Assembly: GCA_026770705.1 (NCBI GenBank)
Contig: JANJGN010000646.1
Span: forward strand, 186,001 to 250,000
Length of the DNA stretch: 64,000 nt
From: Isurus oxyrinchus
Taxonomy: Eukaryota
Direction of reading: 5' to 3'
Position numbers and translations under genes: made by a program. The notes beneath the pieces were generated by a model, which was not told the DNA's origin, made no database searches, and worked only from the letters and a program-made list of their open reading frames with translations. Below are positions 4,594 to 62,802 of the stretch, in pieces. How positions within the stretch are numbered: position 1 is the stretch's first letter; every line of letters starts with the position of its first letter.

Positions 4594-4842
4594 TCAGTTT
4601 TTCTGGAACCTGATCTGTGCGTATTCCGTGTCCTCGCTCCTGTGCACAGTCCTGTCACCGCCGGGCAGCTTTGAAAAGTTGATGTTGGCGTAGAAAAGCT
4701 CGTCGGGTTTGTCGGAGTTCCCATGTCCAACATCGCCTCCCACTGGACCTTCAGAGAGATCCCGGGGAGCTGGGGTCTCCCTCTCGCTAGTTGTGTCTCT
4801 GGTTGTTTCCCGGGGCTCAGAAATCAGCACGTTCTGTTTACC
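4594..4842 (-). CDS. Gene A terminal cytoplasmic exon GKQNVLISE...DELFYANINF...[12 protein letters not shown]
   Basis: Acceptor tttctctgtag, phase 0. ITIM-like LFYANI followed by C-terminal TEYAQI (TxYxxI), the usual Siglec tail arrangement. Confidence 0.88.
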   Translation of the reverse strand, partial: GKQNVLISEPRETTRDTTSERETPAPRDLSEGPVGGDVGHGNSDKPDELFYANINFSKLPGGDRTVHRSEDTEYAQIRFQKN

Positions 4843-7800
4843 CTACAGAGAAATGGAAACAGAAGACATCCTCACATCATTTACTGGCACTGATAGGGTT
4901 AAATTATTCTGCAGCCGTGTTAGTGTCAGTCGTGTCTCAGTGGGTTTAAGCCTTTTTTTCACTCTCTTTCTCTGTCTCTCTTTCTCTCTCGCTTTCTCTC
5001 TCTCTTTATAATTTAATCTCTATCACACTCCAACAGTGCAGCACTCCCTCAATACTGACCCTCTGACAGTGCAGCACTCCCTCAGTACTGACCCTCTGAC
5101 AATGCAGCACTCCCTCAGTGCTGACCCTCTGACAGTGCAGCACTCCCTCAGTACTGACCCTCTGACAGTGCAGCACTCCCTCAATGCTGACCCTCTGACA
5201 GTGCAGCATTCCCTCAGTACTGACATTCTGACAGTGCAGCACTCCCTCAATACTGACCCTCTGACAGTGCAGCACTCCCTCAATACTGACCCTCTGACAG
5301 TGCAGCTCTCCCTCAGTACTGATCCTCTGACAGTGCAGCACTCCCTCAATACTGACCCTCTGACAGTGTAGCACTCCCTCAGTACTGACCCTCTGACAGT
5401 GCAGCACTCCCTCAGTACTGATCCTCTGACAGTGCAACACACCCTCAGTACTGACCCTCCGACAGTGCAGCACTCCCTCAGTACTGACACTCCGACAGTG
5501 CAGCACTCCCTCACTTCTGACCCTCTGACAGTGCAGCACTCCCTCACTACTGACATCAGGTGCCTTGTCATTATTGTGTTCAGGTTTCTGGTCAAAGAGC
5601 GAGTGATGGAGGGAGACAGAGGCAGGGAGCGAGAGACAGTGCTGACCACTGAGCCATTGCTGACTTCACAGGGCGATATCTATGTGTAACCCGGTTGAGA
5701 ATCTGGTATACGTGTTGTCTACACACTGAGGTTGAAGCTTTGGAGTGAGTGTAAACAGCTCCTGTACCTGGTGCTTCACAGAGAGTGACCTGAGGGTCAA
5801 TGCAATGTAATTGGTCCCTGAACCTCTCTCCTCCATCGCTGTCTTTCTCCTGCAATAACACAATATCACACTGTGGTTATCATATAGCAAAGAGTCAGTG
5901 CAGCACAGACACAGAGCACACTGTAACTTACACCAATGACTGGACTGTCTCTTGTTCCAATAAGGGGTATCAGCGTGATATCACTATAATGGAAGTGTGT
6001 CATGTGATCCAATCTCAGTTTGACTTTTGCTTTGAGCAGAGCACACACTCACAGCTCTGATGCCTTCAAGCTTTCTCCGTATGTATAACTGTTCTCGTGC
6101 TGAGTCCTGATAAACAAATCATTAACATTCTCACCAAATCCCCTATGAGTGATTGGTGTTTTCTGTCTTATACAGTAAATAAGCCTAAGGTATAATATCA
6201 TTATAATAACACGCCATATCTTTGACCCCCCCTCCACCCCTGCTCTTCCCCCCATAGCCCTTCAAATGTTCCCCCTTCAAGTATTTATCCAATTTCCCTT
6301 TTGAAAGTTCCTACTGAACCTGCTTCCACTGCCCTTTCAGGCAGCACCTTCCAGATCACAGCAACTGATTATTATTCATCTGGATAACGGGCAATGAAAA
6401 ACACTGTCTGGATCATAACGGATAAAGAGACCAGTTAGGGAGAGGCATCTGGCGCTTAACACAAGGGAAACAATCACCGACTTCAGGAAAGAACATTGAA
6501 GCAAATGTTTATATTAAAATCAAGTTAAATCTTCCCACTTACTTTCTCACACAGATGAAGATGAAGATTCCAGCCAGGAAAACACTCAACATGATCCCAG
6601 CCGTGAACAATCCTACTGTCCATTTACTGGAGTCTCTACCTGTAAAAACAGCCATTAATTACTGCACTACAGGTTTACAATGATGCTCTGATGTATCTCG
6701 AGAAGCGATACACTCACTCAGTGTTTAAATACTCATTCTCGGGCAATGCTGACATTTATTGTCCATCCCTAGTTTCCCTTGAGAAGGTGGTGGGAGGTCT
6801 TCCTCCTGAACCACTGGTTTGTCCCAAACTGGGAGACCAGTTCAGAGGGCAGGTGTGAGTTAACCATGTTGGTGTCTGAGACTGGAGTCACATCCACATC
6901 GAGACATGCTTCCCTCCCTAAAGGGTATGTAGTCTCTACACATGTAACAACCAACCTCATTGAAATAATCGCCGATCAGGTCATTAAGACACGGTGGTTT
7001 GTGGGATCTTGCTGTGTACAAATCAGTACCTGTGTTTCCTCCTTTACAACAGTGAGCTTACTTCGATAATGCTTCATTGGCTGTTGAATGTTTAGTCATT
7101 TCTAAGCAATTTATGAATACAAGTGTTGCATTTCAAAGTAATCCATGTAACCAAGACCAATGAGTGGCTTAGATCAAGAGGAGATGTTCAGAAATTAAAA
7201 GGGTTGTTCAGGACAGTTAGAGAGAGAAAGGTCGTCAAGTATGGAGATTGGAAACGAAGACCTGACAGCCTTGTCCTCACAACCATTGAAGGAGAAACTG
7301 AGAGCAAAAACAGAAAGGGAGAGGAAAAATTGGATGTGTGGATAACGTGGACTGAGCGAGGATTGAAGAAAACTGGATTAAAAACAACACGATCCCAATG
7401 GCTCCACGGAGACCATGGAGACAACAAACAAACAAATGTATCTCCACACTCACATTCCACAGTGATGGTTATGAACCCCTCCACTGCTCCATGTTCATTC
7501 TCTGCCACACTCTGATAGTCACAACCTGGGCCCCCTCTGCCCTATCAGGTTGGGATAAACAATCCCAAGGGTCAATACAAGGAACAGCTCTCCCTGGTAC
7601 TTGTGTGGCATGAACATTAATTGTCATTTCTCAGCCCAACTGAGTGTTATTCAACTCTTGCTGTGTGTGGATATGTAAACTGTCACGCTGTAATTACAGC
7701 CTTCCACCAGAGGAGACACTGTCAGGCTAGAAGAAAAGAAAATGTCTTTCACATCATCAGGATGTTCACAGGGATTTGACAGTGGAGGAATTGCTTTAGA

Positions 7801-62700: not shown

Positions 62701-62802
62701 TCTCGACAGAGCAGATTATCACTGCAGAATTCTCCTCAATTATATTGACCGATGAAGCGTTAATCATATCAAGAGAATTAATTGAGAGATTCTGTGGTCC
62801 AT
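55067..62802 (-). CDS. Gene D (5'-incomplete): at least 4 C2 repeats, TM, 3 cytoplasmic exons
   Basis: Phases are consistent: 1-1 (x4), 1-2, 2-0, 0-0, 0-stop. Confidence 0.78.
55282..55633 (+). repeat. 24-bp minisatellite (TTGATTATTGATACTGAACGGGGT), ~14 copies
   Basis: Direct inspection; 8-aa ORF periodicity. Confidence 0.95.
55769..55873 (-). CDS. Gene D cytoplasmic exon KRGEGKAGIKSNHHADEYRGPVYENCERGWALRNQ
   Basis: ctattacag acceptor, CAG/gtgagt donor, 105 nt. Confidence 0.75.
55940..56215 (-). mobile_element. CR1 3' fragment
   Basis: RKHFFTQRGVEIWNSLP; similar to 1540-1800. Confidence 0.8.
56385..56525 (-). promoter_or_regulatory. Fourth copy of the first-exon/promoter module, inside a gene D intron
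   Basis: 56225-56510 matches 52010-52300 and 43630-43920. Confidence 0.45.
56595..56694 (-). CDS. Gene D cytoplasmic exon RSTSTPGVSSELKLAQRLLSFTQESRHRVRTQK
   Basis: ctgttccttcag acceptor; 100 nt, phase 2-0 as required after the TM exon; donor AAG/gttaac is weak. Confidence 0.6.
57172..57268 (-). CDS. Gene D TM exon RDSNEWKAGLLGAGICLSVGLSGFFIFKCVRK
   Basis: 97 nt, same boundaries as the A/B TM exon but diverged in sequence. Confidence 0.87.
58527..58808 (-). CDS. Gene D C2 repeat exon
   Basis: 282 nt, intact. Confidence 0.9.
59796..60077 (-). CDS. Gene D C2 repeat exon
   Basis: 282 nt, intact. Confidence 0.9.
61110..61391 (-). CDS. Gene D C2 repeat exon
   Basis: 282 nt, intact. Confidence 0.9.
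62521..62802 (-). CDS. Gene D C2 repeat exon
   Basis: 282 nt, intact. Confidence 0.9.

Follow-up and report, generated by a model that had tools for sequence, protein, structure and literature searches.

A probable tandemly duplicated Siglec-family cluster with three signalling tail cassettes in the shark Isurus oxyrinchus

A 64,000-nt stretch of the Isurus oxyrinchus genome (GCA_026770705.1, contig JANJGN010000646.1, positions 186,001–250,000; hereafter the window, whose own numbering is used throughout) contains four receptor units, every exon of which lies on the minus strand. From high to low coordinates these are gene D (62802–55067, here C2, transmembrane (TM) and tail exons) and genes C (52255–47511), B (43875–26730) and A (21201–4594). 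We consider it probable that they form a large, tandemly duplicated shark Siglec-family cluster in which phase-1 immunoglobulin (Ig) exons have been reshuffled onto three TM/tail cassettes: an inhibitory-type tail (A and B), an Arg-bearing TM without tyrosine motifs (C) and a tail of YxN motifs (D). The cluster is annotated but undescribed, and literature searches found no dedicated paper on Siglec clusters of sharks or other cartilaginous fishes.

Exon units were found by six-frame open reading frames (ORFs), tblastn with the window's own exon peptides and self-blastn. Apart from the 5' exon of gene C and the shortened copies, all exons listed below are bounded by an acceptor AG and a donor GT, and the phases are compatible (Ig exons 1-1, TM exons 1-2, the following exon beginning in phase 2). 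Between genes, identity is 98–99% in the exons of domain 2 (D2) and 95–98.6% in the repeated C2 exons, and the leaders of A and B have the same protein sequence. A first-pass annotation of this DNA had described four genes reusing near-identical leader, V, D2 and C2 exons. The exon families are indeed near-identical; the full set occurs together only in gene A. The four tails that it listed (TNYIAL/LFYANI/TEYAQI; TEYAQI; Arg-TM without Tyr; YEN/YAN/YGN) lie where they had been placed, with canonical AG/GT borders.

Domain by domain, the ectodomain exons resemble those of Siglecs. The V exon matched V-set (E 4.5e-12) and Ig_CD22 (E 3e-11) in Pfam, domain 2 matched C2-set_2 and the repeated exon matched Ig_3/I-set. 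When the V exon was compared with all solved structures, the 18 highest-ranking distinct PDB sequences were without exception Siglecs (E 3e-15 to 1e-8), including Siglec-5 (59.7 bits), CD33 (55.9), MAG (55.7), Siglec-8 (55.7), sialoadhesin (53.9), Siglec-15 (37.9), Siglec-10 and Siglec-7, so a placement of the V domain outside the Siglecs is not borne out. The polymeric Ig receptor pIgR came next after the Siglecs (E 4e-8), and CD22 scored 26 bits. The position of the sialic-acid-binding Arg is kept in the V exon of A and the second V exon of B, because YFFRIE in both aligns to YFFRVE of Siglec-5 (GPYFFRIE to GSYFFRVE for the V exon searched) with the F-strand Arg conserved; this Arg is absent from the first V exon of B (YFFTIK), and gene C has no V exon. 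The V cysteines (GSCTQIPC...DGDCSL...YFF) comprise C-x4-C plus an E-strand Cys, with the F-strand Cys absent, and those of D2 (VSCTFNTTC...LSC, C-x5-C) align to vsCmvpdnC of MAG domain 2. This 3+3 pattern is of Siglec type, with a presumed disulfide connectivity to match. Foldseek with a single-sequence AlphaFold model of the V domain ranked sialoadhesin first (TM-score about 0.55–0.6); the model is weak (pLDDT 65), and the result is consistent with a Siglec V-set but adds little.

The same exons recur in other elasmobranchs. Searched exhaustively and without a profile, the V exon had 1377 matches, of which the closest were NCBI models of Scyliorhinus, Mustelus, Cetorhinus, Carcharodon, Chiloscyllium, Stegostoma, Hemiscyllium, Hypanus and Pristis. 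The nearest proteins thus come from sharks and rays, in agreement with the cartilaginous-fish origin that had been guessed from the letters. V identity is 71–76% for the nine best representatives and 64–71% for Stegostoma, Hemiscyllium and Carcharodon. These models, which are predictions only, share the leader, V, D2 and C2 modules and the three tail cassettes exon for exon. Cetorhinus model P0004 has the ITIM/ITSM (immunoreceptor tyrosine-based inhibitory and switch motif) tail, in the order V-V-TM-RKT...TSDIAL...-GKQNV...LLYINV...; the V-bearing S. torazame model P0006 ends in the Arg-TM tail (...C2-C2-LSGGENLDVILILGIRAVIFIVVVIITVAGICVCERRTVKGSRQTV); and Carcharodon P0014 and Chiloscyllium P0007 have a D-type TM, an SSTGR...GEQSD exon and YxN exons. 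That other sharks' models hold all the cassettes gives independent support for the way we join the exons, and the distinctness of the inhibitory, Arg-TM and YxN tails, proposed from this one locus, is conserved in those models. It had also been expected that automated annotation would call such genes only MAG-like or CD22-like. NCBI instead names the relatives Siglec-8, -10, -11, -12, -13, -14, -15 and -16, CD33-like and MAG-like (for example Cetorhinus 'Siglec-12' XP_078389734, S. torazame 'Siglec-12' XP_072326180, Carcharodon 'CD33-like' XP_041037180 and Chiloscyllium GCC37911).

The next-nearest V-sets belong to ray-finned fish models named MAG-like, CD22-like, Siglec-5 or CD33-like (Anguilla, Clarias, Pseudorasbora, Amia, Polyodon). 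They retain the F-strand Arg as FRIE and are far more divergent than the elasmobranch ones, at 38–46% identity (teleosts 39–46%). Teleost tails (Mugilogobius, Clarias, Pseudorasbora) end in YGN...YANV, resembling tail D; this type of motif was not seen in the Amia or Polyodon models, and no Arg-TM form was present among the ray-finned fish models read. At least the tail types are old, since rays and ray-finned fishes also have this family and a tail of YGN/YAN type, which weakens the first-pass idea of an independent expansion. A teleost study describes fish genomes as being without CD33-related Siglecs (PMC7226832).

Gene A is a complete ITIM/ITSM-type Siglec-like gene. Downstream of an 85-nt 5' exon, to which we return below, it has a leader (20726–20645, ATG at 20684), a V exon (17158–16793) with the key Arg intact in YFFRIE, a D2 exon (15933–15637) and seven full 282-nt C2 exons (14672–14391, 13730–13449, 12888–12607, 11839–11558, 10755–10474, 9491–9210 and 8442–8161), the fourth of which carries an in-frame stop (CGA>TGA). 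A C2 copy with an internal deletion lies near 15436–15300 and a 3' C2 fragment at 7520–7452. The TM exon (6639–6543) is uncharged and is followed by a cytoplasmic exon (5849–5768) with TNYIAL and a last exon (4842–4594) with LFYANI and TEYAQI; this TM-cytoplasmic-tail order agrees with Cetorhinus P0004. The ORF at 5980–5669 had been a candidate for the TM and was rejected in favour of the exon at 6639–6543. Membrane-proximal LFYANI and distal TEYAQI give the tail an ITIM plus ITIM-like/ITSM layout. Where A has the Tyr of TNYIAL, other sharks carry Asp or a different residue (TSDIAL, TSDLSL, VSDIAV, TNVISL), and for that reason the additional motif looks like a recent gain in A (GAC>TAC), not a loss in B.

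Gene B has one leader (43382–43301) for two V exons. The outer, V1 (38018–37641), opens with VGLSQEW in the manner of an exon that follows a leader, and its key Arg is replaced by Thr (YFFTIK); V2 (34004–33639) starts with AEPSQEW and reads YFFRIE. They are followed by D2 (32910–32614), a TM exon (30009–29913) identical in protein to that of A, a cytoplasmic exon with TSDIAL (28805–28724) and a last exon (26978–26730) with LLYANP and TEYAQI. TEYAQI is the sole fitting motif, because LLYANP, at the ITIM position, has Pro at +3. No C2 exon was found within the assembled letters of gene B, and three gaps in the intron after D2 could conceal such exons. Multi-V layouts are common in sharks, with two to four V stretches per model, and the AEPSQEW linker between V1 and V2 is also found in V-V models of Mustelus and both Scyliorhinus species. 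In place of AEPSQEW, the V-V model of Cetorhinus carries SVGLSQEW, and it retains the Arg that the outer V of gene B has lost. Human Siglec-12 also has two V-set domains, the outer one with its Arg mutated. In both proteins, then, the outer of two V domains is without the key Arg, a likeness that is likely to be of independent origin.

Within the window, gene D consists of four C2 exons (62802–62521, 61391–61110, 60077–59796 and 58808–58527), an uncharged TM exon (57268–57172) that is 97% identical to that of Carcharodon P0014, an 85-nt cytoplasmic exon (56469–56385, GSSTGRGHSAQAERVGSSSPGEQSDRSW), a YEN exon (55873–55769) with EYRG and VYEN, and a last exon (55183–55067) with LYAN and, just before the stop codon, VYGNL. 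This tail order agrees with Carcharodon P0014 and Chiloscyllium P0007. Tblastn with the window's exon peptides found no leader, V or D2 at 62802–64000. The pYxN motif is the consensus for the Grb2 SH2 domain. LYANC-x7-VYGNL is spaced like an ITAM, the immunoreceptor tyrosine-based activation motif, but its first +3 residue is Cys, and the terminal VYGNL fits an ITIM too. The YxN/ITAM-like tail might therefore engage Grb2-type or Syk-type partners, and its motifs do not fix the sign of the signal.

The 85-nt exon links this tail to the other three genes. It is present in four alignable copies, all on the minus strand, at 21201–21117 (A), 43875–43791 (B), 52255–52171 (C) and 56469–56385 (D), with the sequence AGGGAGC...TCCTGG followed by the donor GTAAGT. 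In D it serves as a coding exon of the cytoplasmic tail, and it has this role in the models of Carcharodon and Chiloscyllium too. The other copies lie, with about 320 bp of flank at 93–94% identity, about 390 nt upstream of the A, B and C leaders, and RNA contigs of three runs splice the exon to a leader exon. When the frame of the D tail is read onward from it, a stop is met in the leader exons of A and B; the exon is thus non-coding (5' untranslated) in these genes. Most simply, the unit of tandem duplication would have begun within a D-type tail. An interpretation of the 320-bp element (at 21.2k, 43.9k, 52.2k and 56.4k) as a transposon or a leader was rejected; it has no ATG-led signal peptide and contains the 85-nt exon.

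Identity between genes varies from exon to exon. Between A and B, the D2 exon is 99.0% identical (synonymous divergence, dS, 0.013), the flanking introns 86–88% and the V exon 91.5% (dS 0.16, non-synonymous divergence, dN, 0.059, dN/dS 0.37), while the tail has dN 0.21 and dS 0.23. Signs of homogenisation of the ectodomain are seen in D2 and C2, and not in the V exon. A tract of 1.2 kb that spans D2 and the V-D2 intron is 97–98% identical between A and C, with uniform identity (97.5–98%) along it, while the leader block of C is 94% identical to that of B and 89% to that of A. Gene C is a mosaic, because its leader block is nearer B and its D2/intron tract nearer A. The C2 units fall into two subtypes whose membership does not follow the genes (branch lengths 0.02–0.14), which, together with the identity pattern, fits unequal crossing-over and conversion. 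We propose that new genes would arise by unequal crossing-over that reshuffles the leader, the V-set, the C2-set domain 2 and the 282-nt C2 'stalk' exon, the last of which would be duplicated in tandem units of about 1 kb.

Signalling by the resulting receptors can be projected from known Siglecs. Human Siglec-5 carries LHYASL and TEYSEI (PMC2722167), a proximal ITIM plus a distal TEY-type motif that the shark LFYANI/TEYAQI resembles. By this match, a Src kinase would phosphorylate LFYANI and TEYAQI, and TNYIAL in A, and SHP-1/2 would be recruited, following binding of a sialoglycan by the V-set Arg of A and B. Siglec-14 pairs with DAP12 and its gene has undergone conversion with SIGLEC5 (PMC4042635), and macaque KIRs bearing a TM Arg are reported to rely on FcR-gamma rather than DAP12 (PMC8102735). 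The Arg-TM cassette may, like Siglec-14, find its partner in an ITAM adaptor with an Asp, for example FcR-gamma or DAP12.

The gene with this cassette in the window is C, whose 5' half is decayed. Its 85-nt 5' exon (52255–52171) has lost the acceptor AG, its leader (51760–51682) has a 1-bp deletion, and its V exon is reduced to a remnant at about 50991–50960, some 30 nt from the V 3' end. D2 (50101–49805) is intact. Of C2, the 3' half remains (49479–49329), the 5' half and the acceptor being missing, and the TM/tail exon (47650–47511) encodes DSGGEILHVILILGIRAVIFLVAVVITITGVCVWERQTVKGSRQTV before the stop codon, with no Tyr. This exon reads ILHVILILGIRAVIFLVAVVITITGV and then a 12-residue tail, so that there is a basic intramembrane residue and the tyrosine motif is absent; it matches the end of S. 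torazame P0006 at 78% identity. Homology between A and C, at 97–98%, begins at the D2 donor, continues across the intron and ends about 30 nt into the V exon, upstream of which the sequence is unrelated, and the loss of V falls in continuous, gap-free sequence. The leader deletion is real, as the extra base at 51705, present in A and B, occurs in just 26 of 2044 of the depth of one RNA run (X1). Because the Arg-TM gene has no V exon, A/B and C do not have a common ligand-binding domain here, and the shared-ectodomain pairing of inhibitory and activating genes proposed in the first-pass annotation is not supported in the window, whose Arg-TM gene has about 30 nt of V. Rather than a counterpart of A and B that senses sialic acid, gene C is most likely a transcribed remnant or a source of a V-less product. 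The locus is a caution that an intact-looking activating TM exon may belong to a gene without a binding domain.

RNA contigs placed on 47400–52400, the Arg-TM gene, came from four runs in four studies and two organisms. Two joints were present in all four runs: 49805 to 47650, from the D2 donor to the Arg-TM acceptor (GT..AG), skipping the half C2, and 50960 to 50099, from the V donor to the D2 acceptor. The joint from the 85-nt exon to the leader exon (52171 to 51759/51760) was present in X1, X5 and X7, and in X1 it was exact for gene C's own sequence. In X1, contigs also left the locus at 52171, continuing into the first 13 nt of the YEN exon (55873), and at 49329, which joined the start of a C2 exon. 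A further loose end in this run, at 49806, joined D2 to a sequence reading YKPEISQQSE, which in longer shark Siglec models belongs to the Ig domain next to the membrane. Since an exon of this kind is missing from the window, this transcript comes from a paralogue elsewhere; tblastn found none of the domains of those longer models (KPEISQ..., PPRQTT...) in the window. X5 and X7 also had a joint from 49328 to 52255, which takes a C2 exon end directly to the start of the 85-nt exon and skips the TM exon. In a D-type gene this would give a frameshifted, TM-less and possibly secreted isoform, and it may stem from a paralogue. Taken together, the joints are proof of such mRNAs, though not of their origin at the C locus.

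These contigs bear on whether gene C is a working V-less receptor, with a single C2-set domain on the Arg-TM, paired with an ITAM adaptor and acting as an adaptor sink or as a ligand-independent or differently liganded activator. We regard this as unlikely, though it is the best placed of the alternatives. Its D2 and Arg-TM exons are intact and canonically joined in the four runs, its own 5' exon and leader are exactly joined in X1, and an upstream ATG restores phase 1 after the deletion. However, the rescued N-terminus, being acidic and short in its hydrophobic core, would make a poor signal peptide, a leader-to-D2 joint is not listed among the contigs, the D2 contigs bear A/B-type letters, and the lost 5' acceptor together with the shortened C2 forms a pattern of decay.

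A second alternative concerns the ligand: the genes may be Siglec homologues by descent that do not bind sialic acid, a lineage-specific Ig family directed at proteins or pathogens. The Thr in place of the key Arg in the outer V of B would suit this account, as would a V exon that evolves faster than D2 (dS 0.16 against 0.013, with dN 0.059). The Arg, its YFFRxE context and the Siglec cysteines are nonetheless kept in the V of A, the V2 of B and most shark homologues, and we give this account a distinctly low probability.

Lower still stands the possibility that A/B and C are a true inhibitory/activating pair for the same ligand, the missing V of C being an assembly error. In its favour, the 1.2-kb A-C tract resembles the SIGLEC5/14 conversion tract, and V-bearing Arg-TM models do exist in S. 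torazame (P0006). Yet the V loss lies in gap-free sequence, the homology to A ends inside the V exon with an unrelated flank, and the leader deletion is confirmed by reads, which together leave a true pair at this locus very improbable. The human pairs SIGLEC5/SIGLEC14 and SIGLEC11/SIGLEC16 are among the closest known systems: there as here, Siglec genes lie side by side, one type with a proximal ITIM and a distal TEY-type motif, the other with a short tail and charge within the TM, and there are signs of exon-level homogenisation. Unlike the human pairs, the window's Arg-TM gene is without a V domain, the signs of homogenisation are in D2 and C2 and not in V, and the shark cluster has a third tail type (YxN/ITAM-like), tandem V exons and a variable C2 array.

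That assembly duplication or haplotype collapse produced the repeated exons, as gaps at microsatellites beside repeated units might suggest, can be dismissed almost entirely, since the copies differ by 1–15%, have different flanks, tails and private lesions and have related multi-exon models in other species; they are diverged paralogues, as had been supposed (A/B introns 86–88%, C2 branch lengths 0.02–0.14).

Several points weigh against the preferred reading of a shuffled Siglec cluster. Sialic-acid binding, phosphatase recruitment and adaptor pairing are what we infer of it, and every RNA datum comes from assembled contigs. The contigs carry A/B-type letters, not those of C, at 50048 (D2 contigs) and at 50100 (contigs with the V-to-D2 joint), and one intron contig is A-like; because of these letters in the D2 contigs, the D2-to-Arg-TM joint may come from another locus. 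Contig placement covered the gene C region, and expression of the A, B and D genes of the window is presumed. The 5' end of gene D lies outside the window, gaps may conceal C2 exons in B and extra units in A and D, and gene C, which with the 1-bp deletion is read in phase 1 from the upstream ATG, might still be translated.

We put forward tentatively, as a wider proposal on which the balance is rather against than for, that sharks have an ancient three-way Siglec signalling system (ITIM/ITSM, adaptor-coupled Arg-TM and YxN/ITAM-like) built by cassette shuffling, with duplication breakpoints internal to a tail turning a cytoplasmic coding exon into a spliced 5' exon for the genes that follow. 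Paired activating and inhibitory Siglecs have been treated as a rapidly evolving response of mammals to pathogens with sialic-acid mimicry. If the proposal is true, paired Siglec signalling and its homogenisation machinery would be more than 400 million years older than mammals and not a mammalian or primate innovation; a shark cluster of the same logic would shift the origin of the design towards the base of jawed vertebrates. It would add a third tail type, multi-V heads and a stalk of variable length, and would offer a natural system for studying swaps of signalling modules in receptor families.

The window contains eight N runs, and no recognised exon is cut by a gap, the gaps lying in (CA)n intron or 3' flank. 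Those at 13304–13440 and 60958–61101 start 8 nt past a C2 donor (GTGAGTTA, then N) and replace a (CA)n tract; those at 31196–31335, 31379–31723 and 31964–32450 lie in the (CA)n-rich intron 3' of the gene B D2; and that at 26372–26515 begins about 215 nt beyond the gene B stop. An imperfect (CA)n tract lies 3' of every C2 donor (for example 12600–12400, 14390–14160 and 31964–31100), and the first five of these gaps all fall within such tracts.

Longer tandem arrays punctuate the genes. A 33-bp minisatellite occupies the last intron of both A (5033–5554) and B (27127–27706), and its unit recurs inverted over about 2 kb (44161–46075) between the TM exon of gene C and the 5' exon of gene B. A 37-bp array (35824–36382) separates the two V exons of gene B, a 24-bp array (55282–55633) the two duplicated YxN exons of gene D, and a 43-bp array of 31 copies (52416–53730) the stop of gene D from the 5' exon of gene C. 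Retroelement fragments, with reverse-transcriptase-like and other ORFs, occur in both orientations within and between genes, at 2355–3464, 22674–23239, 24290–25020, 28938–29382, 40300–41600, 46657–47166 and 57886–58490.

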